A stretch of 64,000 nucleotides of DNA from Pecten maximus (lineage: Eukaryota), in assembly GCF_902652985.1 (NCBI RefSeq), contig NC_047027.1, forward strand, positions 12,028,001 through 12,092,000, given 5' to 3'. Shown piece after piece: positions 10,087 through 46,769 of this stretch (within the stretch, counting starts at the first letter, position 1; every line of letters begins with the position of its first letter). The translations under genes were made by a program, and so were the position numbers. The notes below the pieces were generated by a model, which did not search any database, had not been told where the DNA came from, and saw only the letters and a list, made by a program, of their open reading frames with translations.

Positions 10087-13000
10087 ATGGTGAAAAGATG
10101 CTGCTGGGGTACCTGTAACACGGACAGCAGGTTCCCCGACCGTCTGGAAGGTGGGGTGACATTTATACCCTTTCCTAAACCCGGCAGGAGTTTGGAAAAA
10201 TGCAAAGAATGGATAAGACTGTGTGGCAGACCACAATCACAACTGAACGAAGAAATCTTGCGTGAGCGTAGTAAAGCCAAACACCTGTTTGTCTGTTCTA
10301 AGGTAATATTGATATTTCAATGTCATATCCTCTTTATATAAATGATAATGTAGTAACTACTTTAGATGACTGCCATGCTCACAGAAATAGGTCGTATGTA
10401 GCGTATGCGTACATGTGTGTGTGTGGGGGGGGGGGGGGGGGGGGGGGGGGGGGATGTACGATACCATACGAATTGTAAAGTATTTCTACCGAGTGTTTGA
10501 ACATGTTTAGCACAGTGCATGTTTCTATAAGAAAAAATCAGCCACAGGGACATGCGTACGCTTGAATCACAAGGACATGTCTAGTCCTTATATACAGCAT
10601 AGGTAATTCTGACTATTTTTTAATATTAATAGCTGTTGTTTACATTTTATGACTGTATATATATATATATCCTATTTAAAGATTTATTTTAAAGGCTAAA
10701 GCAGTTCAGCTCTATGATTTAATAACAACTAACTCTGGCATGAATTCATTTCAATAACAGAAATATTTGTCAGACATACCGGCACTTGTCCAATCTATAG
10801 ATCTATCAAAATGAATTACTTTTAGATGGATATGACACCTGAGACAGCATACATGTATTTAAAAAAAAAAAAAAACAGTAAATGAAATAAAATCCCTCTC
10901 TGCATGCACCTTACACATATAGTACCACAAAAATATAACTATTTATTATAATATATTATACTATTTTAATAAAATGACTTTTACGCGTGCCTTTACTGGG
11001 AATCAAATTTTGTATTTTTTTTTTCATTTACAGTATCTTCATTTTCTTATTGTAGCATTTTGTTGATGGGAAGCCATCCGATTTGTATCCAAATCCAAGG
11101 TCTGCACTTCCCTATGACAGGATAACACCAAGCAGAAAGAGACCAATGCCAAGACCTGATTTGACAAAAAGTACCAAACGAAAAATTCTGGATATCGTGG
11201 ACGAAAACGATAAGTTAGTAATGTTGATTATTTCTATTTAAAAAAAAAATTAAAACACATACATTTATAAACATAGTTATTTCTACATTCTTTTGTATCA
11301 AAACAATTATACAGATCAGGCCTTAATTGAAAAATTGTTTGTTTTTTTTTTTTTTTTCAAATCTGAGCTATGTTTTTTTCAATGGGTAGGTAAAAAAAAA
11401 ATTTGTATATGGTTCAGGGCCCACATGAGGCATTTTGGCAGGTAGTGTTAAAACACAATATTTGAATTTCACCTTAGTCTGGGTGGGAAAATGGAACAAA
11501 CCTGGCACATCCTCAAATGAACCTAGCTGTTAGTTAATAGGACATGGTACATATATAACAAAATCAAAATATTGACACTTCCACACACTTTGGAGACACT
11601 CTGGACAAGGTGATTCATTTTAATATGTTGCTATGAATTCAACACAATATGTAACTCCAAATAAAAACAAATACTTGTATTTAATATCTTTATTTTGATT
11701 ACAGCATCGAAATGGAGAGCATTGTGGTGCCATCTGAAGTGCAATTAGACATGCAGAAAGATGACAATTTGCTTATGAAAGGTAACTGTTTACAATACCC
11801 CATATTTTACTTTGCAAAATAGGGTTTGAAATGGTCAACATAAAAATGGGTAAGTTTTTCCACCAGAGTTTTCATGGTTTCCTTATGTGGAAGGATTCTG
11901 TCAATGTTGAAGTCCTGTTTTGTGTAAGTTACAAAGTCACAAAATTGGGCACCTGTGACCAAAAGCTGCCCTTGCACTTGGAACCAGTGCATATGCATAT
12001 TAGATAATTCATATTTCCCTCCATTTTTTTCTAAGAAGAATTTGTTGCTGTTGGTACATGCATCTTCAATTGTCATGTCTCTCACAGAATATGGGCACTT
12101 GATTTCAACTAATCCAGTAACCATTTTGTCACAGACAATTGCATCTGGGGTAGCTCCTATAAAGGGTAGCTTGGGGTTTATCACAAGGCCAATATCATGG
12201 ATATGGTTGCCACTTTGTTTGATGTACATTTGTTTGGCTATTAGTTCATTTGCCTTTCCATAAGATGTTGGAGCTGATGTAAAACTTCGCTCCTGAAAAG
12301 TGCTCATGAAAGCATCATTAATAATTTTTTTTCGAAGCATTATCCTACCAAAGTTTGATGCAGTGATTCTTTTCTTTCTCTCTGTGAACCACAGTTGTGT
12401 ATCTGACTGAGAGCGAGTTGACTTTTCAATATCCTGTGCCTCTGTTTGGGTTAATGATACATCCCCCCATTCTGGTGTTGGTGCTGGTGCATCAATACAG
12501 CTGGGTAGCTCCTTAGGAAATGCTATATCTCCACATTTGTCAGAATTTACCTCCCTTGGTTGAGTGACAGGTTGTATAAGGGGAGCCTGAAATTATAAGG
12601 GAAGTCTGCCTGATATTATACAAACTAAAATTAATGTGATCATCACAACACAAATATGTTAAATTGAATAATAAATTAATAATATTATGGATGATACAAG
12701 TATTTCATTGAAATAAGAGAAGATACACTGTAATTAAATCAATAATTTAAAGAAAATACTTTTAATTTTTGTCGTTTGATGTATATTATCCTCTCTTATC
12801 TTTGATTGAACAGTTGTTATCTGTGTAATATTTGCTATATGTACATAGCAAAAATTGCTATTAGTTTGTGTTTGTATTTTAAACAGATATTTCCTATTTT
12901 CCAGAAACACAACCTTTAGACCTACTGGCTCTGGCTGCTGAAAACAGAAGATTAGACCAGGAGCATGCCAAACTTATATCAAACAACGCACGTTTAAGTG

Positions 13001-14001
13001 AAGGTTATTCCAAAATGATACTTCAATATGAACAGTTATGTCGAAAGACAACTTCCCATGAGGTACAGGGGGATTCCAAGGCCATGTTCAGCTGTAATAA
13101 TTTGAAACCATCAGATTACCAGTACTACACCGGATTTTCCAGTGACAGATTTCACAATTTGGTCAAGTTTTTTATCCCATCAGAAGAAGAGCCATTTACA
13201 TTTACAAAAACAGTGAGTGGAACAAAAAATATTTCTTTGGAAGACCAGCTTCTTCTTGTGCTGATGAAGTTACGACAAAATTTTGATTTTGTACATTTAA
13301 GTAACCTATTCATGTTTTCTTCTCAGGCTTGCAGCACAATATTTTCCAATTGGATTAATTACATGTTTTTCAAACTTGGTTCACTTGTGATTTGGCCCAA
13401 AAGAGAGGAGATAGTGAGGAATATGCCATCGAAGTACAAAGAGGATTTCCCTGACACGATTGTTATCATCGATGGAACAGAACTCAAAATTCAAAAACCA
13501 AGTGCATTAAATCGACAGAGTCAGTGCTACTCGGACTATAAATCCTGTACTACCTTGAAAGCTCTAGTTGGTGTTGATCCCAGAGGATCGGTTATCTTTG
13601 CCTCAATGCTTTTTTCTGGATCTATTTCGGATAAAGTTTTAACCAAAGAAAGTGGTTTTCTTAACCTTCTGACAGACCTCATTGAGCAACAGAAAATAAA
13701 CAGAGGGGATGGTATCATGGCTGACAAGGGTTTCCTTATTGAGGATGAACTGAAGGAACTTGGACTCAAGTTAAATATTCCACCATTTGCTTCAAGTGGA
13801 GCACAGATGAAGCCAGGGGATGTTTCAAAAACTATAAAAATTGCAAAACACAGAGTTCATGTGGAAAGAGCTATTGCACGTATCAAGCAATTTAAAATTT
13901 TGTCTGACAAAATAAGCCTATCTTTATTTGGCTGTATAAACCAAGTTTGGTTAGTTTGTAGTTTGTTGACAAACTTCATGCCATATTTAATACAAGACTG
14001 A
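10087..14001 (+). CDS. THAP-domain DDE transposase (Harbinger/ISL2EU type), 4 exons, 515 aa
   Basis: Exons 10087-10302, 11056-11213, 11705-11781 and 12905-14001. All introns are GT-AG, phases 0/2/1 join in frame, total 1548 nt. The THAP motif C-x4-C...FP...W...VCSK|HF is completed across intron 1. An HTH-like segment LEDQLLLVLMKLRQN follows. Catalytic motifs are IIDGTE, MADKGF and RVHVERAI. Confidence 0.92.
10414..10453. repeat. (GT)n followed by a ~30-nt poly-G tract in transposase intron 1
   Basis: Directly visible in the sequence. Confidence 0.9.
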
Positions 14002-23121: not shown

Positions 23122-26100
23122 TCACCCATCATGTAATGGAGAAACATAATGCTCATCTGTAGTCCAAAACTTCTTGCTTAAATTAACATTCATACTTTCA
23201 TTTAATTTGACTAGCAACTGTTGAAACACTATATTTTTTGTTATAGAATTTTCCAGGTCTGGAAAATGAACAGCAGACACGTCAGTTTTACGAGGAAAAT
23301 AATCAATTTCTATCTCCTGTAACATCATTCTTCTAAAAGCATAAAAATCCTTAATAGCTTGAAACGACATTTTATCTTAATATGTATTAACAAGTTCATC
23401 CGTCCTTTCTCCATTGAAGAAAGACAGTGATACCGAACGAATAAGGGAATATTCACTAAGAACATGCTGTCGATGGTTAACTTGTGCATTGAGATGCATT
23501 GCTTTCATCCAATAAATATTGTTTTGTCTCATATAACTGTATGTTTCCTCGAATTTTATTTCTAAGATAAACGAAGGGCATGTCCTCATATTAAATGTAT
23601 TTAAAATTACAGCATTTTTAATTACATTTCGAAACATTATCCGTAAGGGAGGTCTAGCATTTATCGATTCATCCCTACTGATGTTAAATCTGTCTAATGT
23701 ATGATTTGAAAATTTTGCTTCTATATCTTGCATATCAGCTGGAGTGAATTTGCTATCTAAAAGCGCCCGAGACAACTCGGGTGATATTTTAGCAAGATCA
23801 GTACATAAGCGCACTAACGGTCGAATGAAAAGCGATTTGTGCATTGCTTTCGTATGATATAAATACGGATGTGTTAACCTCGTTATGAAATGCACGTGTA
23901 CAGGAGCACTCATTAGTGTAGAAACGTTATCTGTGGCAAACATTTGTAAAAATACTAACTCGGCCATTTTGTCCGGAGAAACGTCGACCACAAACTTTTT
24001 ATGTAAAAATTCTATCACGTCAGAATGATCGAAAATCTTAGCAAAATACAAAGGAGTAAATGAATGTACATTTGTACACTTTAGAACGCGTCTGCGGAAA
24101 GCTTTATACATAGTCATTAACAGAGATAAATGACCTTTTATAGCAGCCCTGTGTACCAAACTTAAGTTTTTAGACTTTGGTTTACAGACATCAGCAAATC
24201 TTAGTTTGTTCAAATTCAACATTTGAGATAACATGTATGAAGAAGTCTTGTCAAAGTTCTTTGTCAGATTATAAAAATCCCTTTCGTAGTAATGACGGTA
24301 AAACTGTACTTTACCGTTGTTTATGTAAGACACTTTGTAAGTCATGAATAGACGCGACTTTAAGTGATCCATCAAGTAGATATCTGCATGCGACACACCA
24401 AGGGAAACCAGGTCTATAGCTTGAGAGGAAGGAAGCCCGCGTACAGTCATGCCCCTCTCTATCAAGAACTTCACTGCGACATAATTACCACCCATCACAG
24501 CATGGTGTAGTACATTGTAACCATCTCTATCATAGCATGTTTCCCAAAATGAAATAAGTTGGGATTTCAATACATTAAATGCCTCATCTTTTGTAAAATA
24601 AATCCAGTACCTATTATTTTCATTCCTTATTACTCTGTGAATAAGACTTTCCTCGAAGGTTTTGTTACAAAAGTCAGAGGTGTATTGCGACAATAAGCTT
24701 AACATACCCTTTGCAGGTTTTTCGACAGAAAAGAACGCCCTAAGTAGTTGTTTATCGGCGGATACAACCATATTCCTCGGCTGGAACATAATGATAGAAT
24801 ATAGGATGAATGTGTTACCCTTCATTACGGCCAATCTGTGGTACTTAGGAAAGTCCACTGATCGCTGGATATCTGATATTTTCTCCCGTAAAATCTGAAA
24901 TATTCTATAAATGACCGTTTCTTCCTTGCTCAAAATGCCATCATACTCAAAAAAATGTTGTTTCTTTAAAAGATCTATAATTGAACAGTTATCACATAAA
25001 GTGTTCTCGTGGTGGTGTGGTAAGTTGTCAAATGCAATATCTATAACATTTTTATTCATGTTGTTTACGTCTAATAAAAGTGATATATTAGACCTCAGGC
25101 AAAAAGGTATAATTACCTGATGATTTCCTATTTCAGCCGCAACATGTAGAAAAGTATTTAAGTTGTTGTCTTTTGTTGACGTACTCAACCTGTATTCATC
25201 TAGTAGAAGTAAAATGTCATCTTTACTTGTATATTCTACTCCTAAGACGCGGTAATGAAACAATCCCCTACCTGCTTTGTCTACCAGTTGTTTATTCGCA
25301 ACAACATAATGAGGGAGGATATAACGCCGCATACGACATCAATGCGTTACACAAAACGGCAGAGTGTATCGGCAGAGATCCATTTTTCGCAGACAAAAAT
25401 ACATTACTATCCCCAGCGCTTATAATATATTGTATCATTTCCCATTCGTTATTACAAGCTGCGTAGTGTAACGGCGTATTACCTGATTCATCTTGTACCG
25501 TCCAGTTTAGATATATGCCTTGAGACCGTAGATTTTCCGCTATTTCTTTTTCTCCGTTCATTGCGATAAGATGTTCTATTGTAGTCCCTAGTTGACACAT
25601 GCCATTATCTAAAGCCGTTTTCTCGTTGATATTGAACAATCGGAGGGAGTGTCTATTTGTTACATTGTATAAATGTTCACATTTGTCCGTAAAACTTCCT
25701 CCCTTGTCTAAAATAAGATCAAGTATTTCCGATCGGTTATACCTTACAGCCGTAAGAAGTGGGGTTCTACCTCCATACTCCCGACAATGTAGAGCGTTGG
25801 TTGTTTGTGCTAGTAGATAAGATACTATTTCAGTATAACCTCCTTGAACGGCAACTTCTAAAGCGGTTAAACATTCTATTAATCTTGTATCATCGTTTAG
25901 AACGAATGTCACATTCTCTAACTCTTCGTATTGATTGGGATCTGATAAATCAAAAGAAAAAATATCACTTATGTTAGAATATGGATGCCACTGCATTCGT
26001 TTAGTGATGTTAGCGATCCAGTGAATTCTATCTTCACATTTAACACAAACGTCCTTGACACTATGATTTAACAGTAATAGCACAGACCGCAGGTGACCAT

Positions 26101-29100
26101 TCTTTGCGGCTAAATACAGCGAATGTTGATCAGCTAACGAAGTATTTATTTCTAAAAACCTTTTCAAAATGTCTGCATGACCATGCTCAGCAGCTAAGTG
26201 AACAGCGTTAACACCTAATCCGTTTTTGAAGTATAATAATGAGTGGTTTTTAGACAACAAAACATTCACTACATCTGTGCGTCCATTTTGAGCAGCGATA
26301 TCTAGTAAACCGTAGCCCCATAAAGCTTTATATTTGCAAACGTTAACTACATCTTCCCACCCTCCTTTATTCGGGTGGTTTTGTACTCTAAATGAGTAGT
26401 TGCCACCCTCCTCTATCAGTGCTTTTAGTGTTTCCGAATTCCCAAACGCCGCCGCCAGAAATGAAGCAGTTACATTTGTGGATGTTAGGCTATTGATGTG
26501 TTGACTACCAATAGCTCTAATTAGCAATTTGGTTCCGCGAAAAGAATTTCTCGTTTTGGCCATTAGGTGGAGATGATGTGCTGTATACATATTCTTCAAA
26601 AAGTGTTTGCTGCGTTGGAATGAATGAAGAAGATCAGAATCTGATGACTCGGCCGTGTGTATGAATAGACTTAGTATATCTGTCATACTGTTGTTATGTT
26701 TACTCAAAAGGTAGTTCGCAAACAACTTGTGACCGTTGTGTGTAGAAATGTAATACTTATGATATCCGGAGCTGTTGCTAGTAAGGTAATCACAGATTGC
26801 CTTGTGATATATGCTTATATAGGTTTTGTGTTCAACGAAATTTGAAATTTGGTTTCTGAGCAGATCTCGCAGATCGTATGGATGATTTGTAACATTTAAA
26901 ATGGCTTCCAGTTCATCTAGTTGTAATCTTATATAAGAAGTACATAAAACCTCAAACACATTCCTAGCAACATCGTACAAATGTTCCTTATCACCAAATA
27001 CACGGTCAAGATTATAAGCATATAATTCACTAAGAGACTGGGGGATATCTGTTACTTTACTATGCGGAGAGTCTATCCAGAATTTAACGGCAAGATCCAC
27101 ATATAAAAAATTTGATCTACTGATATTTAAGATATGTTTTGTTACCACCTTCTTATCGGCGTGTATCCCAAACAAACGAGACATCACGGGTTTGTGTATG
27201 AACAGAATTTCTTCGAGATAGGCTGTGATGTCGTTTTGATTCTGGACATTCCCAGGCTCTTCTTGAAGTATTGTCATTTCAGGCAATTTCCTAGTAACTG
27301 CATTTATATTCCTAGCCGTAATAAAGAATTTCAGCCACCATGGCATTTTGCCGATTCGTTTTGATAAGACATCAAGAATAGATATATCGATGGCGGCCGA
27401 AACACCACACTCATCGATAGCGTCAATGACAACATACCTCTCCTCGTCAAATGTAAGTCCGCGTAAAGGATGAATGACTGCGGCGTCGATACAACCAACA
27501 GGATCCTCCGCACACTTGCTAGTTTGTAAAAAGGCCATCGCTAATCGACTAGTCAAAATAGCAAAACCTGCTTCTGGTAACTTACTTATTAACATTCCTG
27601 CGAGGTTTTTAATGAAATAATCTGGTTTCTGTGTACTAATAACGTCAAACTTACAAATGTGATATGATAAAATATAATTTTGTATACCACTTTTACTCGA
27701 CAGCTTACTGGTACAAAGAATGTGTGATACTAACGTAGATTTACCGTACCCCATCTTAGCTGTCAGCAGGATGCCTCTGGAAGGTGTACCGATTAAGGAT
27801 GTTTGGATCTTATCAATAAGCCACTCCCGGCCAAACAGGGGACGACGATCCTGAAGATAGCCGTCGAAAGTAAAATCAGATTCAAATGGACACGGTTTAG
27901 CAAATGTCATCGTTAAACATTCTGAAAAAAAGTTTGAATATTTAAATGAATATATGTACACGAGTGCGAGTGTTAGTTACAGTAGCACGTTGAAGTAAAA
28001 TAGTCTCTTTATAATGTTCAGATACTTAACAATCTCAAAAACGTTTAATGTATAAACCGCATATAAGATACCTTTAAATTAAGATTTTCCCTTTATTTCG
28101 TAAATTAAAAGTGTCCGCAACCACGTTTTCTAAATACTTGAATCAATGAAATGCAATATTACAATTCGATTGGCGTTCAATTCAATTCAATTATTGCGTT
28201 GTATACAGATTAGGCAGCAAAAAAAATTGAAATGTCGATGAAAATATACCACGCTTATATTAGAGAAGCATAATAGGAAATTGACTGACAATAATTGCAT
28301 CTGACTTGTTTCTATAAAAAGAGACTGATATTTCAAAACAAGCCGATTTGATTTTTATTCATCAATTTCGATTTAATCTGCAAATGATAAATTCAAATAC
28401 AATACAATATAGACAGTATATCAAGGAAGAAATTAATAGATGTTGCGACCTTTTCGGGAGTAATATACGACGGAAGAGTAGAGCTTGAGTACAGAAAAGG
28501 TACGTGGAAGAAATTTCGAAGACGAGTGGCTTCCAATTTTTCAAATTACACTATCATTACATTCGATTACATATTTTTATTTCCCGTAAATCGACCAATT
28601 TCGAATTGCGTTCCCTTTCCCTTATCTGTTTAACATTACCTTTTTCATCGCTGAGTCCTTTCCTAGTTGTATCATTCCAACGGATGTTAACCACCCAGCC
28701 AATCACGAGGATAAGTATACATACTATCAATGAGGCAAGTAAGTATTTTCTGTATCCGTCATTGTTCTCTTCGTCACGCACACATAATCTCATTTCCTGA
28801 ATGTTTTCATTTCGGTCCAATATATCTCTTTGGGCGTCGTCGTGTGGATTCAATGCAAGGACCAGATGGTTCTTAATATTGTCATCCTCTGTTATAAGAT
28901 CTAAAACGCATCTTGATTTTAAACGTTTCAGTTGTGAAATAGCCAGTTTGCCACTCCCGGTTCGAGAGATTTCTGGGAGGTTGAGGAATGAAATAAGATT
29001 CCTTAAAGCGGCCTTCTTTTTTGTATTACTTACTTGAAGATGTCCATGAGCGAACAGGGCGTTCCGAACATCTCTAACACGCTGACAAGTCAGAACAGGA

Positions 29101-29534
29101 ATGTTAAATTTTGTACAGTTGTGTAACACATGTAATCCTACAGAAAGGTCTTCTGTGAATGGAGTCCTTACCCTCCACCATTCTGGGGCGAAAGCCTTCA
29201 CCATCTCGTCGACATTTTTGGGCAAATCTGATGAATTAATCTCTTCCCATTTGATGTGTCTTTTTCTTGCCCTGTATTTGTTATATAACATGATTTGTTC
29301 TTTCCATTTGATACACGTCGGACACCATGTTGAAAACTTTCGTTGGGTCTTGCTACAGTTTCTTCCACAGATCGGCAGTTGTGCGCATGCTCCATACTTT
29401 ATGTCGTGGTGCAAAGCTAGAAAAGTACCCTCCAGATATTCTGATATTCCCTTTGTCGTAACAGAAATTGCTACAGCCACGTCAAGCCAATTGGAAAAGT
29501 CGATGTCTCGAATCTGTTGATGTAGCGAATCCAT
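23122..29534 (-). pseudogene. Paralog A: HEPN(DUF4559/CXorf38-like)-TM-NACHT-ankyrin gene, disrupted (pseudogene or truncated 1174-aa form)
   Basis: Coding exons 29534-28640 and 27921-23122 with a phase-1 GT-AG intron at the same position as in B and C. Motifs: RNALFAH, TM YLLASLIVCILILVIGWVV, Walker A AKMGYGKS, Walker B VVIDAIDEC. There is a 4-nt insertion (CCCT, ~25312-25315) relative to C and an in-frame TAA at 23379-23377. Confidence 0.85.
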
Positions 29535-34699: not shown

Positions 34700-34870
34700 C
34701 AGTGGTAGCGAGTGTGATAGACCGTGAATTGCTCTCCTTTGATTGGACAGGTGTTTGAGATTGGGTGAGTACAATTATAAACACGGTCTTTTTCACCTTG
34801 ACTGGGATCTTAAACAGACTCCTCGTAGGTACGTTATAATCCAGCCATTTCTGTAATATTTTGCAAGCTT
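34700..34870 (+). promoter_or_regulatory. candidate core promoter and short non-coding first exon of paralog B
   Basis: Reverse CCAAT box GATTGG at 34741, TATAAA at 34776 and donor CGTAG|GTACG at 34829. The block is conserved with 46770-46930 upstream of paralog C. Confidence 0.6.
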
Positions 34871-36925
34871 TCATATACTACAGAATGATAAGATAGTATG
34901 TAAGTATTTTACATGTATTTGTGTACAGCATTTACTGACACTGTATCAACGCTATCCGGTCCTGGGTGATATTGAAGCCGTGGAGCATTACTTTGTGTTT
35001 ATTACATCTACCCAGACCATGTTTGTGTCTACTGGTGATATATTGTTGCTTTCTGTTATAATTTTCTCTGACTCAGATCATTAAATACCAACAAGTACAT
35101 ATTAAACTATGTAATGGAGATCTAGGGTTGACTGAGTATATATCGCCTGCTATCGATTGCGGGTGTTATCGGCTTTTATTTTAGTTTATGCTCTATTTGA
35201 GAAGGTATCCCACTAGGCTAGACCTTTGTCTGTCATGTATAGAACTATGACGATGATTCTAAATTTAGGTTGAAGTGGTGGGGTTTTATTGTGTAGAGGT
35301 AACTCACTTCCTGTTTATTGTTTGTAAGCAGCATGCCTGTGTTGATATTTTATTACATTTCCCATTATTGAACATTTGATACAGTTAATTTATGAAAATC
35401 TTATAAATTGCAATATCGTTTCGCTTTCGCTTTAATCCTTTCAATGCTATTCTTATGTCTGGAAATTTATCGATCGAAATTATTTTGTGAGCTTTATGAA
35501 ATAATCATTATTGTGATTTCATTAAGGTTTTATGAGTGACATCAGATGGTTGCTTACTTTCGGTTTATATTCCTGGAAGTTTCCTTTTCTTAGTAAATTG
35601 TCAAATTCTCTTTCACTTTTGGTTTAGAAAATGTGTGAAAATATGATTTTGTGTTTAAGGTGTCTTCTATTTCAAACAGGAACAAAAATTATTTCATGTC
35701 CTATAAGTTAACGGAACGTGACACCATATAAAACCGTGTAGCCGGTTTAATATGTTTTTCGTAGAAATATTTCATACCCTGACATATTGTGGGTTATATG
35801 GTTCTCATCAGATATATTGAGTTTGATTGTGTAGATTTCCTGTAAACCTCAATACTCTTCTATGAGGTCAAGAATCAAATACTTATCAAATGGGAGGGTT
35901 CCATATTTTGTGGTTGTAATGTTCATACATTCTGTATTGCATCTGCCTATATGTCATAAGTATCAATTGTATTCATTAGACTTTATACGGCAATTTACAG
36001 TGTTTCGGTCAGTGTAAAAATACAGCTCTAGGTGTAACATATTAAAACAATGGCCGCCAGTTACTGTTCCGGTATTTTAACTTGATGACGTCAGTGATAG
36101 GGGTCCCAGGGGTTGTTTGATTGTAAGTTGTCCATTGGTCTGTCTACAGTGAACTAGTGTTCACTTCCACGATCAAATCAGTGTCTTCTCGGAGTCCCTG
36201 GCTAGGTCAGGTGAGCGTTAGTATGCTGTGTTAACATTCATATGTAGGTTGATTTTGTGTTTTAATTGAACAGAACAAAATCACAATAATTGTTTTAGAT
36301 AAATGCATTGATCAATCATTTCCTAGTTAAAAACTGGAATTAAATGTTTCGTTGCCAACGTCTCTATCTTGATATTTTCTTATGTCCCCATTCCACGTGA
36401 CTGGCACGAACAACCTCATGATCGGTAATTTGGCAACCCATTAACGTATCTCTTCGTACAAATTAACATGATACAATAATTCATCATTTAAAAACATGAC
36501 AATTTGTTGAACGTTTCTCTAATTATTCACGTACAATTATTCAAATGTTTTAAAAACGGGCCTTATTTGACAAAGTGTCATCTTATTTACTACTGTTTTG
36601 ATAAATTTGACGACTTTTTGCATTTCCGTAAGAATGTAAAGCACTTTTCTTTGCTTTTGCACAACTACCTTCACGCACTATATAAGGCATATATAGAGCC
36701 ATTTAACAGTTGCAAACATTCGCTTCAGTTCAAGAACACGCCATATTAATTAGTTTTGACGTGGATTTATTACCCAGGTGACCCTATCGTAGTGGCATAC
36801 CTTCCTGCTGCTACTTTTTGGTTTTTTTATCATCTATGTTTGTCTCGAAAAGAAATTTTGTCAAAATAAATTGCAAAGGTATCAGTTTGTTATTAATGTT
36901 CATTCTTTGTTTTAGACTCATTACT

Positions 36926-39900
36926 ATGGATGCACTACATCAACAGATTAGAAACATCGACTTTTCAAACTGGCTTGACGTGGCTGTAGCTATTTCTGTT
37001 ACGACAAAGGGAATATCAGAATATCTGGAGAGTACTATTCTAGCTTTGCATCAAGAAATAAAAAATGGAGCATGCGCACTGTTACCGAACTGCAAACAGA
37101 ACTGCAGCAAGACTTTACGAAATTTCTCAACATGGTGTCCGACCTGTGTGAAATGGAAGGGACAAATTAAGTCATATAACAAATACAGGAATAGAGAGAG
37201 GAAAATAAAATGGGGAGACATCAATTCATCAGACTGGCCCCGGAATGTCGACGAGATGGTAAAGGTGTTCGCCCCAGAGTGGTGGAGAGCTAGGACTCCA
37301 TACACAGAGGACCTCTCTGTAGCGCTGCATGTCATTCAAAACTGTACGAAATTCAACATTCCCGTTCTGATTTGTCAGCGTGTAAGAGATGTTCGGAACG
37401 CCCTGTTCGCTCATGGACATCTTCAAGTAGACAATGCCGAAAAGAAGAACGCTTTCAGGATTCTTCTTACAATCCTCAAACTGCCAGAAATCTCTCAAAC
37501 CAGATCTGGTCGATTGGCTATTTCTCAACTGAAACGCTTAAAATCAAAATGTGTTATTGACCTTATGACAGAGGACGAAGCTTTTCGACATCACTTGGTC
37601 CTTGCCCTGAATCCCTACAAGGACACTGATAGAGAAATATTGAACCAATATGAACACGTGAAGGAATTGAGACTATGTTTACGTGAAGATCAAAACGGTC
37701 AATTACAACGAATATTGACAGAGCGAACACGAATTGTCGGTAGAGTATATGGAAATGGGCGATTTGCAATTGCCTTGATAATTTCTTTCATATGTATAAT
37801 TATTATCCTGTTAAATATTGGTCACAGGGATGACACGACATGGGAAGGACTACACAATGAGAAAGGTAGGTTTGCTTTGTGTCTTCAGATCAAATAACCT
37901 CCGATTTTTTTGATTTTTTTTTTGGAGGGGGGATGGGTGACGATAACACACTCTGTCTTTCAAAATGTTTTATCCCAGCGACTATTTTATCTAACACATG
38001 ATATTTAAAAGAGAAGGCAACAATTTAATAATTAAGAAAAAAAGTTATGATGCTGAATAATTGGTAGACTTCTATAGAGCACCAGATTTATCTTCTAGAA
38101 CTTGTCAGTAATGCCACAGACAAATTTCGTAATATTTTCTAATAAATCGGATATATTTTCCTTAATATTTTCGTCAAGTGACAAGATAAGGAGTGTTTTG
38201 CTCTTTTATGCAGGTATTGATTGTCATGTCATGAGTTTGCGTGAGAAAATCATGTCGTTTTCTCACAAATTCACGACGATACTCTCAACAAGACTGCATT
38301 ACGAAAGGACAGAATAATATGATTACAAAATTTTGTTTCCTCCGACGAACTATAGTATAGGAAAATAACTGATTTTGCCTTTCAGGTTGTTTGCCGATGA
38401 CGTTTTCTAGCCCCTGCCCATGGAAACCTGATTTTACCTTCGACGGCTATCTGACAAATCGTCCTATCCTCATTGGGCGGAATTGGCTTATCGACAAGAT
38501 TCAAACATCTCTATTTGGAACATCTTCCAGAGGTATCCTGCTGACAGCAGAAATGGGTTACGGTAAATCTACGCTAGTATCGCATGTACTTTGTACCGGT
38601 GAATTAACAGAAAGAAAATTGTTACACAGTTATATTTTATCATATCACATTTGTAAGTTTGACGTTATCAGTACACAGAAACCAGATTATTTCATAAAAA
38701 ATCTCGCAGGAATGTTAATTAGTAAATTGCCAGAAGCAGGTAACGCTATTTTAACTGATGAATTAGCAATGACCTTTTTAGAAACAAGCAAGTGTGCAGA
38801 GGATCCTGTTGGTTGTATCGATGCCTCAATCATTCATCCTTTACGCGGACTTACATTTGACGAGGAGAGGTATGTTGTCATTGACGCCATTGATGAGTGT
38901 GGTGATTCGGCCGCCATTGGCATGTCTATTCTTGATGTCTTATCAAAACGAATCGGCAAAATGCCATGGTGGCTGAAATTCTTCATAACGACTAGAAACA
39001 TATATGCGGTAACTAGTAAATTGTCTGAAATGGAAATACTTCATGAAGTGCCTGGAAATGTTCAGAACCAATACGACATCGCTGCCTACCTCGACAACAA
39101 TCTGTTCTTAAACAGACCCGTGTTATCTCGTTTGTTTGGTACACATGCTGATAAGAAGGTAGTAACGGAACACATTTTAAAGATAAGTGGATCCAATTTT
39201 TTATATGTGGATCTCGCTGTAAAATTTTGGATAGACTCCCCGCACAGCAAAGTAACAGATATCCCCCAGTCTCTTGGTGAATTATATGCTTATAATCTTG
39301 ACCGTGTATTTGGTGCCAAGGAACATGTGTACGATGTTGCTAGGAATGTGTTTGAGGTTTTATGTACATCTTATAAAAGATTACAATTAGAGGAATTGGA
39401 AGCCATTTTAAATGTTACAAATCATCCATACGATCTGCGAGATCTGCTTAGAAATCAAATTTCCCATTTCGTTGAATACAAAACCTATATAAGCATATAT
39501 CACAAAGCAATCTGTGATTACCTTACTAGCAACAGTTCCGGATATCATAAGTATCACATTTCTACACACAACGGTCACAAATTGTTTGCGAACTTTTTTT
39601 TGAGTAAATACAACAACAGTATGAACGACGTACTAAGTCTATTCATACACGTGGCCGAGTCATCAAATTCTGATCTTCTTTATTCATTCCAACACAGTAA
39701 ATACTTTTTGAAGGAGAACATGTCCTCGATACGCCATCTTCACCTTATGGCAAAAACGAAAAATTCGTTTCAAGGTACAAAATTGCTAATTCGAGCAATT
39801 GGAATTCAACACATTAATAGTTTAACATCCGCAAACGTAACTGCTACATTTCTGGCGGCGGCGTTCGGTAATTCAGAAACACTTAAAGCGCTGATAGACG

Positions 39901-42900
39901 AAGGCGGAGATTATTTATTTAGAACTCAAAATCCCCCGAATAAGGGAGGATGGGAAGACGCTATTGCGTTCTGCAAATATAAATCTTTGTGGGGTTACGG
40001 ATTACTAGATATCGCTGCTCAAAATGGACACGTAGAAGTAGTGAATGTTTTGTTGGCTAAAAACATCTCATTGTTATACTTCAAGAACGGGCTAGGCCTT
40101 AATGCCGTACACTTAGCTGCCGAACATAGCCATACAGACATATTACAGAAGTTTCTGGAAATAAAAAGTTCGTTAGCTGATCAGTATTCGCTGTATTTAG
40201 CCTCAAAGAATGGTCATTTGCGATCTGTGCTGTTATTGCTAAATCATGGTGTCGAAGACGTTTGTGTTAAATGTGAAGATAGCATTCACTGGATCGCTAA
40301 CAACACAAAGAGAATGCAATGGCATCCATGTTCTAATATAACTGATAGTTATGACTGTGATCCGATATTGATTGGTAAATACAATGAGTTAGATAATGTG
40401 ACATTCGTTCTAAATGATGATACAAGATTAATAGAATGTTTAACCGCTTTAGAAGTTGCCGTTCAAGGAGGTTATACTGAAATAGTATCTTATCTACTAT
40501 CACAAAAAACCAACGCTCTACATTGTCGGGAGTATGGAGGTAGAACCCCAGTTCTAACGGCTGTAAGGTATAACCGATCTGAAATACTTGATCTAATTGT
40601 AGACAAGGGAGGAAGTTTTACGGACAAATGTGAACATTTATACAATGTCACAAATAGACACTCCCTCCGATTGTTCAATATCAACGAGAAAACGGCCCTA
40701 GATAATGGCATGTGTCCACTCGGGGCTACAATAGAACATATCATCGCAATGAATGGAAGAAAAGAAATAGCTGAACATCTGCGGTCTCAAGGCATATCTC
40801 TAAACTGGACGGTACAAGATGAATCAGGTAATACGCCGCTACACTACGCAGCTTGTAATAACGAATGGAAAATGATTCAATACATCATAAGCGTTGAAGA
40901 TAGTTATGTATATCTGACTTCGAAAAATGGATCCCTGCCGATACACTCTGCCGTTTTGTGTAATGCATTTATGTCATATGCAGTGCTACATCCGTATTAT
41001 TTAAAAATGTTAAAAACTATTAAAAAACTTGTAGACAGCGCTGGTAAGGGATTGTTTCATTACCGTGTCTTAGGTGTAGAATATAATAAGGACGTAAGAG
41101 ATACAATAGATCTGCTAACAACAGATGAATATAGACTGAACACGGCAGTAAAAGATAACAACTTAAATACTTTTCTACATGTTGCGGCTGAAATAGGAAA
41201 TCATCGGATCATTATACCTCTGTGTTTACGTTCTAATACGTCACTTTTATTAGAAGTAAATAACATGAATCAGAATGTAATAGATATTGCATTTGACAAC
41301 TTACCACACCATCAAGAGGACACATTATGTTTTAACTGTTCAGTCAGAGATCTTTTTACAAAACAACAAAATGTTATGTATGATGGCGTTTTAAGCAAGG
41401 AAGAAACGGTTATTTATAGAATATTTCAGATTTTACGAGAGAAAATATCGGATATCCAGCGATCAGTGGACTTTCGTAGGTACTATAGATTGGCCGTAAT
41501 GAAGGGTAACACATTCATCCTATATTCTATCATTATGTTCCAGCCAAGGCCTCTGGTTGTACCCGTCGATAAACAACTACTTAGGGCGTTCTTTTCTGTC
41601 GAAAAACCTGCAAAGGGTATGTTAAGTTTATTGTCGCAATTCACCTCTGACTTTTGTAACAAAACCTTTGAGGAAAGTCTTGTTCACAGAGTAATAAGGA
41701 ATGAAAATAACAGGTACTGGATTTATTTTAAATTATGTGAGGCTTTTGAAGTTTTGAACACCCGGCTTATTTCATTTTGGGAAACATGTTATGATAGAGA
41801 TGGTTACAATGTACTACATCATGCTGTGATGGGTGGGAATTATGTCGCAGTGAAGTTCTTGATAGAGAGTGGTATAACTGTACGCGGGCTTTCCTCCTCT
41901 AAAGCTATAGATCTGATTTCCCTTGGTGTGTCGCATGCAGATATCTACGTGATAGATCACCTAAAGGCACGACCATTTATGACATACAAAGTGTCCTACA
42001 TAGAAAACGGTAAACTGTCGTTTATTAAGCATTACAATGAAGATTCTTTTTACAGGCTGACAAAGAACTTTGACGAGACCTCTTCATACATTTTATCTTC
42101 AATATTGAAATGGAACAAACTAAGGTTTGCACATTTCTGTAAACGAAAGTCTAAACAGTTAAGTTTGGTACACAGGGCAGCTATAAAAGGCCATTTGTCT
42201 CTGTTAATGACCATGTATAAAGTTTTTGGTAGACGCGTTCTACAATGTGCCAATGTACATCTATTTACTCCGTTGTATTTTGCTAAAGTTTTCGATCATT
42301 CTGACGTCGTAAATTTTTTAGGAAGAAAATTAGTGGCTAACCTTCTTCCATACAAAATGGCCGAATTAGTATTTTTACAAGTGTTTGCGGCAGATGACGT
42401 TTCTGTACCAACAAATGTCCCAGCCCACGTGCACATCATAACAAAGTTAACTCATCCATATTTATATCATATGAACCCAGTGTACAAGTTATTTGTCCGG
42501 CGAACGTTCGCGCGATTGTGTTTCGATGTTGTTAAAACGTTACCGGAACTTGGTTCGGTGCTTCAGAAAAGTACATTTAATTCGGCTGATATACATGATA
42601 CTTTATCTCCCTTTTCAAATCATACATTGAAAATGTTAAACATTACCAGAGATACACCAATAAATGAAGAACCCGATTTAAGTGAAAACATGCAAATTTT
42701 AGTTAATGCGACAATGAAAAAAAGTGCAGATTTGGCATGGGCATGTCCCCAGATAGTTTGGGCCTTGAGGTACGAGGACTTTTGTGTCTGGCAAAGAAAA
42801 AAGATAAATTTTTGTATTTTGTCTGAGATTCATTCCTCACTCACCAATATTCACAAACTTTATACTTGGTTTCAGTTTTCAGTAATCAATTCGAGATCAC

Positions 42901-43202
42901 TTTCATATTTTCATACAGACAGAATTCTTCAATTATACAATCATTACATGGTAGATATGTCCTTTCAAACTATTAAGGAATTTTATGCATTTAGGAGGAA
43001 ATCATTAACTGATATGGAAAGTGATATTTTCCCACGTTATTCCAATGTATCTACGACTCACTTTCGGTCCTTGGCATATTCAATTAATGAACTTCTATTG
43101 AGTAAACAGAAATTAGTTATGATAAAGAAGTTAACGGCGTTTAATCCGAGAATAAAGTTCTGGCATAAGATCGATAAATTGCCATTTCCATTATACGAAT
43201 AA
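36926..43202 (+). CDS. Paralog B: intact 1918-aa HEPN(DUF4559/CXorf38-like)-transmembrane-NACHT/STAND NTPase-ankyrin repeat protein
   Basis: Exons 36926-37865 and 38386-43202 (AAAG|gtagg ... ttcag|GTTGT, phase 1, 5757 nt open). The N-domain FSNWL...CKQNC...CPTCVKWK...W...WP...EMVKVFAP...NCTKF...VRNALFAH follows the CXorf38 pattern. TM FAIALIISFICIIIILLNIG at 37763-37822. Walker A AEMGYGKST at 38547, Walker B YVVIDAIDEC, sensor FITTR. Ankyrin motifs include GLNAVHLAA, GRTPVLTAV, GNTPLHYAA, GYNVLHHAV and FTPLYFA. Confidence 0.9.
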
Positions 43203-43585: not shown

Positions 43586-44670
43586 AACTGAACAAAGATA
43601 AAAAAATGTATTGATTCATATTTATTCTGCAATTTTCACAATCACTTAACATAGTGTGCGAAATAGCTACGAAATATTGTGGGGTACAAAAAGCGGAGAT
43701 AAGTCAAACACCTCTATGACAACTTGCAAAAGCGAAAAGTGTGCATAAAATACTAAAATGTTCGTTACTGAGACTGCATAACTCAATTATTTTCACAACG
43801 TGTAGGTCCATATTTGAGTTCAAAATCTACATCAACCTTAACTGATGGCTATACGAACAGATGTTGAAAAAAAACTGACTGTGGTGTTTGTATTTAATTG
43901 TTAAACAGGGGCAGTCATGTGATAATTGGATATACCTTCTTGTACCTTCAAGTTTGACCTTTTCATCAGTTCCCAATTTCCTAAAATTTTACCATCAATA
44001 CTAAACATATCATCCCAAGTACTTGCAAATGTTTTTTGGTGTACAAGAACCGGAAGTGGGTCTTTCACTTCCATAAGATATTGAAGTAGCTAAAAACAGT
44101 GCCTCAATATATGAACATTATTTGGTTTTTAAGATTGTGTAACATGAACATATCCATTGTGTGATATTTACTTACATATTTAAGCTCATGTTGGGTTTTG
44201 TTTTTTCAGAAAATCATGCTCTGAAGGATATAAGTTCATTGAACAACATCCTTCATTGTTTTGATGAAATGAACCCGTCCGATACATCTTGTAGGTAACA
44301 CAATGTGATAAAATAGACTTGACATAGACTTAGAGGGCGTTGTCAATGAAGCTGATCAATTGTTACCTTCCGAAATGCATGTTCTGGCTTGTGTACTGTT
44401 CATTGGCGTTATTATATATACTGTCACTTTTTATGTTGTTTTGAGTTCTGAGGTTTAACTCACATTTCGCTTCTCTATAGATACTATTTGTTGTTTATGA
44501 TATAACATAGGCTTTCACATGAAAATATCGTTTAGTTATTTTCATTACATTTGTAGTCCATGCACAAATATTTCATGATTTCTTAACTATTTTTTACTTA
44601 TATTTCATATATATGTTTTCTTGTAGTTATTTATGTATGTAAACAGACCACTCACCACCATATCATAAAC

Positions 44671-45700
44671 AATGTTTAGTTACTGTAATGTCTGTCTGAC
44701 GTCTGACTGATGTTTGGTTACTGTAATGTCTGTCTGACGTCTGACCAATAATTGGTTACTGTAATGTCTGTCTGACGTCTGACTGATGTTTGGTTACTGT
44801 AATGTCTGTCTGACGTCTGACCAATAATTGGTTACTGTAATGTCTGCCTGACGTCTGACTGATGTTTGGTTACTGTAATGTCTGTCTGACGCCTGACCAA
44901 TGTTTGGTTACTGTAATTTCTGTCTGACGTCTGACCAATGTTTGGTTACTGTAATGTCTGTCTCACGTCTGACCAATGTTTGGTTACTGTAATGTCTGTC
45001 TCGTGTCTGACTGATGTGTTGTTACTGTAATGTCTGTCTGACGTCTGACCAATAATTGGTTACTGTAATGTCTGTCTGACGTCTGACTGATGTTTGGTTA
45101 CTGTAATGTCTGTCTCATGTCTGACCAATGTTTGGTTACTGTAATGTCTGTCTCACGTCTGACAAATGTTTGGTTACTGTAATGTCTGTCTCACGTCTGA
45201 CTGATGTTTGGTTACTGTAATGTCTGTCTGACGTCTGACCAATGATTGGTTACTGTAATGTCTGTCTCACGTCTGACCAATGTTTGGTTTCTGTAATGTC
45301 TGTCTCACGTCTGACCAATGTTTGGTTACTGTAATGTCTGTCTCACGTCTGACCAATGTTTGGTTACTGTAATGTCTGTCTCACGTCTGACCAATGTTTG
45401 GTTACTGTAATGTCTGTCTCACGTCTGACCAATGTTTGGTTACTGTAATGTCTGTCTCACGTCTGACAAATGTTTGGTTACTGTAATGTCTGTCTCACGT
45501 CTGACCAATGTTTGGTTTCTGTAATGTCTGTCTGACGTCTGACCAATGTTTGGTTACTGTAATGTCTGTCTCACGTCTGACCAATGTTTGGTTACTGTAA
45601 TGTCTGTCTCACGTCTGACCAATGTTTGGTTACTGTAATGTCTGTCTCGTGTCTGACTGATGTTTGGTTACTGTAACCTATGCGACACGTCTGACAAATG
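44671..45700. repeat. 38-bp minisatellite, ~26 copies, downstream of paralog B
   Basis: Unit GTTACTGTAATGTCTGTCT(G/C)ACGTCTGACCAATGTTTG, period 38 (for example 45363 and 45401). Confidence 0.97.
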
Positions 45701-46769
45701 TATTCCATATGTATATAATTAACGAAGTGCAAAAATAATGTTTGACCATTGTTTAAAAAATATCCATTATTGCCTTAAATGGTTTTGTTTTCTAATACCA
45801 ATTGCATGGAAGTTTATGTTTCGTTAGCTTTACAATTTTAACTGAGCAAATGTTTGACGTCAATGTAAAAGCTGATTGTAATAAATTTAGCCGGACGAAC
45901 ATATATGTATGTATGATGCAGAGAAAATGTCAAACTTATTATGGTTGTATCGAGGACGTACACTTTGATTAAAACCGTCTGGATGTTCAATGAACCATGT
46001 CAACAGTTTAATGATTAAGCGTTATGTAACAACATGTATATTTAATGAAAGCATTGTTTTATTGCATTAAATTAATCACTTTCGATTTTCTAAATATGTT
46101 TTTTCGATTCACTGAATAAAGTTAGTTATCAAAGTTAGATGATTTTAGTCTGTTGTCTGTCTACAGTCACCTACAGAAATACAGTTAGACTGACCACCAG
46201 ACACTAGGTGTTTTGTAAGGAATTGCCAAGATAAACTATAATACTAGAGTATCTCCCCTAGTTTGAAATTCTAGAATCAGAATATCCTAGAGACCAAAAT
46301 CATAGCTCACTTAATTATTATTTCATTCATAATTTTGATATTCTAGAGACAGGAGACATGGGACCAGTCTACACTACAGTATGAAATGTGAGCGGTGATA
46401 TCTCAGACCCCTTACAGGTTATTCGTTTATAAAATTAAGATACGTTCTTTCATATGATATTTGACTTTCCTTTTAGCACCTTTTACTATAGAGTTAGGAG
46501 TACAGTAGGGCAACAAATAAATGAAACTGCATCATACAGCTATTTCGCAGCTCGTTATGGGACTTGGTTTCATAGGTTTTAGTTACACTTGCATTGTAAA
46601 CAGTTATGGCTATTGAAAGACGGTCGGCGCTGTGTGCGATATGCACGCGGTTAGTGAATTGTATGTGTGTGTATTTTGACAACGGGTGACCTAATTTATA
46701 TCATAACCTTGCACTGCCACGCTGCTTGTACTGTAACGTTGTATAGCTGTTCGTGGAGGTAGTGTGTGT

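Follow-up and report, generated by a model that had tools for sequence, protein, structure and literature searches.

A 64,000-nucleotide stretch of Pecten maximus contig NC_047027.1 (positions 12,028,001 to 12,092,000; the window) holds two forward-strand open reading frames, at 36818-37897 and 38391-43202, that had been listed separately. The question raised by this locus is whether they encode a single protein and, if so, what a HEPN domain, a membrane helix, a STAND NTPase and ankyrin repeats could do in one chain.

Gene structure and transcription

The original prediction had spliced both frames, here called gene A, into one protein of 1918 residues, and this model is confirmed by RNA. The start codon lies at 36926 and the stop codon at 43200-43202, and removal of a phase-1 GT..AG intron of 520 nt (37866-38385) links the coding parts (36926-37865 and 38386-43202) into one frame, with the donor AAAG/GTAGGT at 37865/37866 and the acceptor TTTCAG/GT at 38385/38386. 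The codon count is 313 + 1 + 1604 = 1918, where the single codon is a Gly formed across the junction. The first coding exon (36916-37865, CDS from 36926) carries the HEPN domain, a linker and the membrane helix, while the second (38386-43202) carries the STAND NTPase and the ankyrin array, ending in a region at the C-terminus that is repeat-like. A 798-nt contig from RNA run X1 joins 37863 to 38384, and moving this GT..AG cut by +2 gives exactly the predicted junction. Depth over the intron (37950-38349) is zero, and contigs of the same run tile exon 2 to beyond 42749. An X1 contig also has a 64-letter loose end before 36913, whose 30-letter consensus has a unique match at 34796-34825; an upstream non-coding exon (3′ end 34765-34828, donor CGTAG/GTACGT) is thus spliced from 34828 to 36916, and its stretch 34765-34828 contains no in-frame ATG 5′ of 36926. 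NCBI model P0001 has the identical junction. Gene A is intact and transcribed.

The long frame could instead be a read-through or chimera of two adjacent genes with separate products, one coding for a tail-anchored HEPN protein and the other for a STAND-ankyrin protein. A vertebrate-type CXorf38 protein corresponds to exon 1 by itself, in many database entries just one of the two exons is represented, and the NCBI gene model at the locus is itself chimeric. Intron retention would also end the frame after 10 codons, so that about 25 residues would follow the helix. Against this, the depth of the junction contig (15.8) is close to that of the exons (14.6-21) with none in the intron, fused models from scallops to mussels keep the phase-1 junction, as do three paralogs in the window, and exon 2 lacks a conserved start codon ahead of the P-loop. 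We consider separate products very improbable.

The intron had been described as conserved in all three paralogs; its position is indeed common to them, but only gene A is an intact copy. Paralog B (23377-29534, reverse strand; exon 1 29534-28640, intron 28639-27922, exon 2 27921-23377, helix 28745-28689) has a frameshift in exon 2 near 25311-25321, at which the 1174-residue NCBI model P0003 stops. Paralog C (53787-60853, forward strand; helix 54598-54651) is a pseudogene with a longer intron, an exon-1 frameshift around 54385-54398, a stop codon within the P-loop (56266-56268) and more breaks at 58656-58671 and 59523-59549. Between A and B, dN/dS is 0.19-0.45 in every domain, beyond the break in B too, and pairwise dN/dS gave no sign of positive selection. 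The P. maximus genome holds at least 8 loci of this family, in tandem clusters that include pseudogenes.

The N-terminal HEPN domain

Residues 10-205 (36953-37540) match Pfam PF15112 (DUF4559) with E 8.6e-22 and 78.4 bits, far above the cut-off of 27, and the assignment of the N-terminal domain to the CXorf38/DUF4559 type is therefore upheld. The domain includes a conserved, Zn-ribbon-like Cys cluster (C56, C60, C71, C74), and its AlphaFold2 model is all-alpha with a pLDDT of 90.3. The predicted catalytic motif RNALFAH (R157, N158, H163; 37394-37414) is conserved as proposed: across 65 homologues, these three residues and D129 are each at least 90% conserved, the pattern expected of a catalytic site. 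The domain does not end at this motif, as had been stated, since the helices run on to about residue 230. Other HEPN models were matched among the same homologues, namely HEPN_Swt1 by 24 of 65 (best E 1.7e-6), HEPN_AbiU2 by 8 and HEPN_RiboL-PSP by 4, and the Swt1-like HEPN group includes CXorf38 (PMC3710099). In human CXorf38, R162, H167 and D134 align with the scallop site, with a D-to-R spacing of 28 residues in both (bioRxiv 10.64898/2026.05.28.728550).

On this conservation, exon 1 encodes a predicted RNA-cutting HEPN domain. Alternatively, the domain may be a sensor or RNA-binding module, with the output coming from the STAND-ankyrin half. Foldseek and two VIA-align searches with the exon-1 model returned no solved HEPN structure, so that the canonical HEPN arrangement was not confirmed by structure search; the wide VIA-align list was taken up by the long helix 232-301 of the model. 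Some family members lack the R-N-x4-H motif, and in a model of human CXorf38 the downstream helices partly occlude the site (bioRxiv 10.64898/2026.05.28.728550). Set against the retention of all four putative catalytic residues in the homologues, a sensor or RNA-binding role appears quite unlikely, and we retain the reading as a putative RNase.

The STAND NTPase, ankyrin repeats and C-terminal region

The P-loop motifs are located where exon 2 was expected to carry them: Walker A AEMGYGKST (38547-38573), Walker B VVIDAIDEC (38874-38900, with its DEC) and sensor-1 FITTR (38982-38996). They lie in an NTPase core (38484-38996) that matches Pfam NPHP3_N (PF24883, E 3.8e-15), where all 32 sequences compared have the same G57, G59, K60, D169 and R203. 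The claim of a NACHT domain holds for a STAND NTPase with NACHT-type motifs but not for the Pfam family, since the protein does not match NACHT (PF05729) and matches NPHP3_N instead. The core is followed by the helical lid, winged-helix and helical domains (38997-39824; AlphaFold2 pLDDT 86.3), and Foldseek aligned the STAND model with MalT (8.6e-8), Apaf-1 (1.5e-5), Avs3, NOD2 and NLRP3, all with probability 1.00, over about 390-550 columns (about 475-490 in the best alignments), extending across the lid and winged helix. The ankyrin array is equally clear (39825-41882, with a Cys-containing insert; Ank_2 at E 9e-40, plus matches to four further Ank models), and the DUF4559, NPHP3_N and Ank_2 matches follow one another in the predicted effector-NOD-repeat order. 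The C-terminal region of about 440 residues (41883-43199) matched no Pfam domain; it possibly consists of degenerate ankyrin-like repeats, as ankyrin clusters neighbour it in the Atlas (0.95-0.96), but with recognition low this likeness is only a lead.

The NTPase-ankyrin half is most like TANC/ANKRD50-type proteins, which counts against reading the protein as an immune switch. TANC1/TANC2, ANKRD50 and NPHP3 share the NPHP3_N-type P-loop followed by lid, winged helix and ankyrin repeats; to our knowledge, they have neither a HEPN domain nor a membrane span. Matches to the TANC-specific Pfam models HTH_TANC1 (E 0.01) and AAA_lid_TANC1 are all below cut-offs (E 0.002-0.01).

The membrane helix and its predicted topology

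Residues 280-298 (37763-37819) form a hydrophobic helix with a Kyte-Doolittle value of 3.12 over 19 residues; no other window of the protein exceeds 1.35. This predicted single membrane span, part of the original prediction, is found at the equivalent place in all 31 long family members examined. In frog and fish homologues of CXorf38, the chain ends 1-3 residues past the helix, making it a tail anchor. Given these anchored vertebrate relatives, the scallop gene looks like an anchored HEPN gene to which a TANC/ANKRD50-like module has been joined. Neither the retained helix between HEPN and NTPase nor the tail anchoring of the frog and fish proteins appears in any paper searched, and the claim that such a helix was undescribed stands as far as the literature searches reach.

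With one membrane span, the HEPN effector and the NTPase would lie on opposite sides of the membrane. By standard membrane-insertion rules, the charges flanking the helix favour a cytosolic HEPN domain in 28 of the 31 members, and if the charge rule holds, the STAND-ankyrin part would be outside the cytosol. We know of STAND NTPases and ankyrin repeats otherwise only from the cytosol and nucleus. Because a single span would part effector from switch, and because such switches and repeats are elsewhere known as cytosolic or nuclear, an ordinary NLR scheme would have to be modified to fit here. The receptor model first proposed for this locus had overlooked this problem.

Family range and comparison with known systems

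Fused HEPN-helix-STAND-ankyrin proteins occur in several bivalve genera (Pecten, Ylistrum, Argopecten, Mytilus, Saccostrea, Ostrea, Pinctada, Mercenaria, Mya, Ruditapes and Sinanodonta), so that the layout spans scallops, mussels, oysters, clams and freshwater mussels. Mercenaria has many diverged copies. In amphioxus and bivalves, the same HEPN domain is N-terminal to NACHT-LRR, NB-ARC-TPR and nSTAND3-Ank proteins.

The novelty of the architecture is partial. Fusions of CXorf38-family HEPN domains to NACHT, ankyrin, CARD and DEATH domains were published for amphioxus and cnidarians (Anantharaman et al., 2013; PMC3710099, Table 1), and over 50 proteins of the HEPN-NACHT type were reported from a pearl oyster (Takeuchi et al., 2022; PMC9646362). 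The scallop protein shares with the CXorf38/DUF4559 family the PF15112 match, a HEPN domain with the Cys-cluster insert, an R-N-x(3-4)-H motif and the upstream Asp, with RNALFAH one residue longer than human RNEIMH; it differs in the NPHP3_N-type NTPase and in the helix retained between the two domains, and the 2013 account lists no molluscs and does not mention a membrane helix (PMC3710099). The bivalve HEPN-NACHT proteins likewise carry HEPN, with Rx4-6H, at the N-terminus, a STAND NTPase in the middle and repeats at the C-terminus, are expanded and clustered, and were proposed to be NLR-like sensors. However, their HEPN domain is of the DZIP3/hRUL138-like family (PF18738, not PF15112), their NTPase matches PF05729 rather than PF24883, no membrane helix was reported, and the genes with NACHT domains number more than 200, compared to the at least 8 loci here (PMC9646362). 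As far as the papers searched go, the new elements are the retained helix and the tail anchoring of the frog and fish CXorf38 proteins.

Ire1 and RNase L, KEN-type HEPN RNases that oligomerization switches on, offer an analogy of mechanism, not membership. In both, as proposed here, HEPN RNase activity requires pairing that a separate domain brings about, Ire1 being a single-pass protein that signals across a membrane and RNase L sensing through ankyrin repeats, but the scallop protein has its HEPN domain N-terminal, reversing the order, lacks a kinase, belongs to another HEPN family and uses a STAND switch. Fungal NACHT-ankyrin proteins of the HET-E/NWD type share the layout of effector, NACHT-clade NTPase with a D-A-h-D-E-C Walker B and non-LRR repeats, a comparison that does not imply common descent of the whole architecture. 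The effectors of fungal NLR-like proteins belong to types such as HeLo, HET and lipase, unlike the scallop HEPN.

A proposed membrane-bound switch

The RNase site of HEPN domains forms on pairing. Exon 1 encodes the equivalent of an entire CXorf38-like protein (HEPN, inserted Cys cluster, D...R-N-x4-H site and helix), to which exon 2, via the phase-1 intron, adds ankyrin repeats preceded by a STAND NTPase of the TANC/ANKRD50/NPHP3 type, within the NACHT clade, whose residues at Walker A, Walker B and sensor-1 are intact. In the mechanism we propose, the repeats would sense a ligand, nucleotide-dependent STAND oligomerization would gather the anchored HEPN domains, and these, once paired, would cut RNA at that membrane, likely in defence or a stress-triggered shutdown.

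The same protein might instead have a non-immune role, either as a constitutive membrane-bound RNA processing or decay factor, or as a TANC/ANKRD50-like scaffold that carries a HEPN domain. TANC/ANKRD50-type proteins have known roles in scaffolding and trafficking. The TANC2-like or ANKRD50-like names that NCBI gives to the relatives, the weak TANC matches, the purifying selection on all domains, the small family in P. maximus and the single, conserved, unexpanded tail-anchored CXorf38 gene of vertebrates fit such a role. The ER-associated HEPN protein C6orf70/ERMARD and Ire1-type decay provide parallels, and ER-membrane RNA decay has been proposed for another HEPN family bearing a TM helix (PMC3710099). 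Tandem duplication with pseudogenes within one 40-kb stretch, the diverged Mercenaria copies and the effector position that this HEPN domain takes in NACHT-LRR and NB-ARC-TPR proteins speak against it, and we judge a non-immune role fairly unlikely.

An immune or allorecognition role is suggested by the architecture, the tandem duplication and the pseudogenes. Overall, gene A belongs to a two-module, bivalve-wide family, and it is reasonably probable that it acts as a membrane-bound NLR-like switch, which would likely serve these animals in defence or stress shutdown.

Gene structure and transcription

The window lies at C13:12028001-12092000 in the 918-Mb Pecten maximus assembly, and gene A runs along its plus strand in two coding exons. 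The coding sequence opens with an ATG at 36926, leaves exon 1 at the donor AAAG/GTAGGT (37865/37866) and resumes at the acceptor TTTCAG/GT (38385/38386), ending at 43202. The intron is in phase 1 and the codon that it interrupts makes Gly. Both of the separate ORFs named in the original prediction are present and splice in frame into one gene of 313+1+1604 = 1918 codons. Exon 1 encodes a protein identical (100%) to NCBI LOC117340258. Similarity and structure searches were run for each exon, with the exon pieces joined only in scripts for reading-frame checks.

Splicing was checked by aligning contigs of four public sequencing runs to positions 36750-42749. A 798-nt contig from run X1 crosses the proposed junction at 37865/38386, matching 37246-37863 and then 38384-38563, with 520 nt skipped and GT..AG ends. 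In all four runs, the intron has zero depth in bins 37950-38349, and X1 contigs tile exon 2 unbroken. Because the depth of the junction contig (15.8) is about that of the exons (14.6-21), the spliced form that includes the hydrophobic helix is the main product in the X1 sample. Runs X3 and X4, both recorded as RNA, likewise contain exon pieces of gene A. One X1 contig also carries a 64-letter loose end before 36913, the single match of which at 34796-34825 points to a non-coding exon further upstream; this exon stops at 34828 (GT), is joined to 36916 and adds no in-frame ATG. The NCBI model at this locus (P0001, 382 residues) takes the true junction of gene A as its first, then leaves the P-loop after GYG (38565) and continues at 53782, immediately ahead of paralog C, in a short frame with LLLWRGYMD as its last residues; this is probably a chimeric gene model. 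Two further X1 contigs contain odd joins, one (depth 5.8) running from 39624 back to 37903, inside the intron, across 27 unmatched letters, the other carrying 255 unmatched letters ahead of 39606. Possible sources of these joins are another paralog, a structural variant and an assembly chimera.

The HEPN domain

The assignment of the N-terminal domain to the CXorf38/DUF4559 pattern, first made by eye, is borne out by the Pfam profile PF15112, which matches residues 10-205 (E = 8.6e-22, 78.4 bits against a cut-off of 27). A phmmer search of the full library with exon 1 returned 173 cluster representatives at E <= 0.001, and conservation was read from 65 sequences, namely exon 1 of gene A and 64 short representatives; PF15112 is matched by 62 of these 65 aligned homologues. 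Conservation in this set is 90% or more at residues C56, C60, C74, W77, W96, D129, R157, N158 and H163, and C74 is invariant. R157, N158 and H163 make up the R-N-x4-H motif, which reads RNALFAH in genes A and B and RNGDFAH in C, just as had been noted from the DNA. In the long family proteins C56, C60, C71 and C74 are 100% conserved and appear to form a Zn-ribbon-like Cys cluster inserted in the HEPN domain, matching the description in Table 1 of PMC3710099. The Cxorf38 family is placed in the Swt1-like group of HEPN domains in the same work (Anantharaman et al., 2013; PMC3710099). In human CXorf38, the proposed residues D134, R162 and H167 match D129, R157 and H163 of gene A, with an Asp-to-Arg spacing of 28 residues in both (2026 preprint, bioRxiv 10.64898/2026.05.28.728550). 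An RNase site in gene A would be a composite one, formed by dimerization of the HEPN domain.

Other HEPN profiles are found among the 65 homologues: HEPN_Swt1 in 24 (best E = 1.7e-6), HEPN_AbiU2 in eight, HEPN_RiboL-PSP in four and DUF4145 in two. The gene A protein itself matches none of these at E <= 1, and the AbiU2 and DZIP3 matches whose positions were inspected lie over the motif. In a protein atlas, the neighbours outside DUF4559 are clusters of HEPN_Swt1 and HEPN_DZIP3 (0.84-0.86), which is a lead only. The AlphaFold2 model of exon 1 is confident and all-alpha (pLDDT 90.3). This model includes a long helix, and no solved HEPN chain was among its matches by Foldseek against the PDB, by the wide VIA-align search or by VIA-align re-ranking, the wide list being filled by the helix of ~70 residues at 232-301. 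Sequence searches of the PDB with either domain, and with the A1 profile, also returned nothing meaningful. Since no solved HEPN chain was matched by structure, the HEPN assignment rests on sequence profiles. A predicted HEPN homodimer scored 0.36 against 0.29 for the control, which counts neither for nor against pairing.

The STAND NTPase and ankyrin repeats

Exon 2 was originally described as a NACHT domain followed by a long ankyrin array. The best description of the first part is a STAND NTPase with NACHT-clade motifs; its Pfam match is to NPHP3_N (PF24883, E = 3.8e-15, 56.9 bits against a cut-off of 24.8) and not to NACHT (PF05729), which has no match in exon 2 at E <= 1. The P-loop motifs picked out by eye, AEMGYGKST, VVIDAIDEC and FITTR, are all found, and correspond to Walker A, Walker B (signature D-[GA]-h-D-E) and the sensor-1 Arg; the D-A-I-D-E-C Walker B together with the sensor-1 motif fits the NACHT clade. 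In a relative (P0158), the NACHT and NPHP3_N models overlap on one NTPase region, indicating that the two models describe related domains. Across an alignment of 32 exon-2 sequences, G57, G59, K60, D169 and R203 are invariant, while S61, D166 and E170 are conserved at 90% or above. The conservation of these nucleotide-site residues shows that the ATPase site is under constraint.

A structure model of exon-2 residues 1-481 (pLDDT 86.3) gave 59 Foldseek chains at E <= 0.001, including 8bob MalT (8.6e-8), the STAND-TPR protein 6mfv (7.7e-6) and 3sfz Apaf-1 (1.5e-5). Further STAND matches were to 8dgc Avs3, 5irl NOD2, CED-4 and 7pzc NLRP3, and all seven proteins named had a probability of 1.00. 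The modelled region is thus predicted to adopt the nucleotide-binding, helical and winged-helix fold of a STAND NTPase. TANC-type models fall below their cut-offs in gene A (HTH_TANC1, E = 0.01, 16 bits against 27), with values of E = 0.002 for HTH_TANC1 and E = 0.005 for AAA_lid_TANC1 in paralog C. Five ankyrin Pfam models match in exon 2, and no leucine-rich repeat was matched in the gene A protein, which is therefore NLR-like in layout only and outside the strict definition of NACHT plus LRR. The last 440 residues match no Pfam domain and at best resemble degenerate repeats.

A single helix between the two halves

The hydrophobic helix of ~20 residues noted between the two domains recurs as one predicted span, its position kept in 31 of 31 long family members. 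In gene A, residues 280-298 reach a Kyte-Doolittle value of 3.12 over 19 residues, with the rest of the protein at or below 1.35 (our own score, not that of a dedicated predictor). The hydrophobic core measures 19-30 residues across the 31 members (mean 22), a length that corresponds to one membrane span and is too short for a hairpin. Every fused relative examined carries one helix between HEPN and P-loop, little conserved in sequence. The genera with both fusion and helix are Pecten, Ylistrum, Argopecten, Mytilus, Saccostrea, Ostrea, Pinctada, Mercenaria, Mya, Ruditapes and Sinanodonta, spanning all three major bivalve groups sampled. In one amphioxus protein (P0126), DUF4559 is followed by a helix and a different STAND NTPase; in other proteins from amphioxus and bivalves, DUF4559 directly precedes NACHT-LRR, NB-ARC-TPR or nSTAND3-ankyrin, and no helix intervenes. 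The helix is also missing from a Mizuhopecten gene model (P0002), and gene A has phase-1 GT sites upstream of its helix, the best at codon 272 (~37740), which together make a helix-skipping isoform of gene A conceivable. No RNA contig uses these sites.

An equally hydrophobic helix lies close to the C-terminus of CXorf38 homologues from frogs (Dendrobates, Ranitomeya, Hyla) and a fish (Enoplosus), which end 1-3 residues after it. Read from its sequence, this is the layout of a tail anchor, which would leave the HEPN domain in the cytosol. The comparison was restricted to these named proteins; unnamed short database proteins that end just after the helix were rejected as evidence of tail anchors, as many are probably exon-1-only gene calls.

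Membrane topology

With a single span, the HEPN domain and the STAND-ankyrin part must lie on different sides of the membrane. In 28 of 31 members, Lys and Arg are more numerous in the 15-residue flank ahead of the helix than in the equally long flank behind it, and in no member is the balance reversed. The positive-inside rule and comparison with the tail-anchored relatives both predict a cytosolic HEPN domain and an exoplasmic STAND-ankyrin part. For the opposite orientation, a folded domain of 280 residues would have to cross the membrane with no signal peptide to direct it; in the exon-1 model, the N-terminus forms a confidently predicted helix that belongs to the fold, and is not a signal peptide.

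Two features of the region after the helix point weakly to an exoplasmic location. N-x-S/T sites are enriched ~1.5-fold (20 against 13 +/- 3.3 expected from shuffles; up to 25 against 14 in relatives), and Cys is the most conserved residue type (0.71). The sequons are a weak topology marker because their positions are not conserved (0.23 for sequon Asn against 0.21 for other Asn in distant members) and some of them belong to the ankyrin consensus. Cys conservation was set aside as a sign of disulfides, being confounded by family-typical cysteines such as that of the DEC motif, which we take to be typical of NPHP3_N-type STAND NTPases.

A full mechanism can be proposed on this basis, one that we regard as possible and rather unlikely. 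The helix would be a type II signal anchor with the HEPN domain in the cytosol, and the luminal or extracellular STAND-ankyrin part would sense there, oligomerize and pair the HEPN domains across the membrane. The model for this type II arrangement is Ire1, in which RNase domains are paired across the membrane. To our background knowledge, STAND NTPases and ankyrin arrays are without precedent in compartments other than the cytosol and nucleus, and the type II arrangement, if true, would provide the first.

Paralogs and genomic neighbourhood

Gene A is the only intact one of the three copies in the window. An intron common to all three had been proposed, and its codon phase is indeed the same in each. 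The reading frame of B (minus strand, 29534-23377) is broken by a frameshift near 25311-25321, where its NCBI model (P0003) terminates. As dN/dS between A and B is 0.19-0.45 in every domain, also past this break, the break is either recent or an assembly error. C (plus strand, 53787-60853) is a pseudogene: its exon 1 is frameshifted, a stop takes the place of the P-loop lysine (56266-56268), and there are two further breaks. Its intron, at ~1.4 kb (54700-56086), exceeds those of A (520 nt) and B (718 nt) and probably contains an insertion. At least eight DUF4559 loci are present in the assembly as a whole. Three of them, each on the minus strand, make up a second tandem cluster (G000:C15:9611650-9654578), and single loci lie on C5 and the unplaced contig C1481.

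The remainder of the window contains a 55-bp satellite (~103 copies, 94% identity) at 1-5710, which runs off the window start and accounts for the strong GC and AT skew in the first 6 kb. A YqaJ-type exonuclease ORF (11807-12340, minus strand, E = 1.9e-12) and a DDE_Tnp_4/HTH_Tnp_4 transposase ORF (13015-14001, plus strand, E = 6.8e-40) form a transposon-like pair at 11807-14001. AT skew is strongly negative downstream of A (44001-46000, -0.23) and C (62001-64000, -0.20).

Origin and significance of the family

Exon 1 corresponds to a whole CXorf38-type protein and exon 2 to a TANC/ANKRD50-like module, and the family looks like a fusion of both through one intron. None of the literature searched states such a fusion, and a search on TANC2 in bivalves found nothing. 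Fusions of the Cxorf38 HEPN domain to NACHT, ankyrin, CARD, DEATH and dsRBD domains have been described in deuterostomes and cnidarians, with a role argued for them in defence against RNA viruses (PMC3710099). In a pearl oyster, more than 50 NACHT proteins carry an N-terminal DZIP3-type HEPN domain (PMC9646362), and HEPN is among the variable domains of bivalve apoptosis and immunity expansions (PMC8195603). These three papers mention neither a DUF4559-helix-STAND-ankyrin family in molluscs nor a helix between HEPN and NTPase.

From the architecture and the turnover of gene copies, we infer an immune role for the gene A family. Fusions of a HEPN RNase to a STAND switch recur as a design for defence in bacteria and marine invertebrates, and to our knowledge none has been characterized in an animal. 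The bivalve family offers a compact, conserved and expressed example in which to test them. Its helix also links these proteins to vertebrate CXorf38, an uncharacterized human gene family, and the tail-anchored frog and fish members suggest that the CXorf38 family acts at a membrane surface. In essence, the helix leaves two choices: a STAND-ankyrin module that functions beyond the cytosol, or a breach of the usual rules of membrane insertion.
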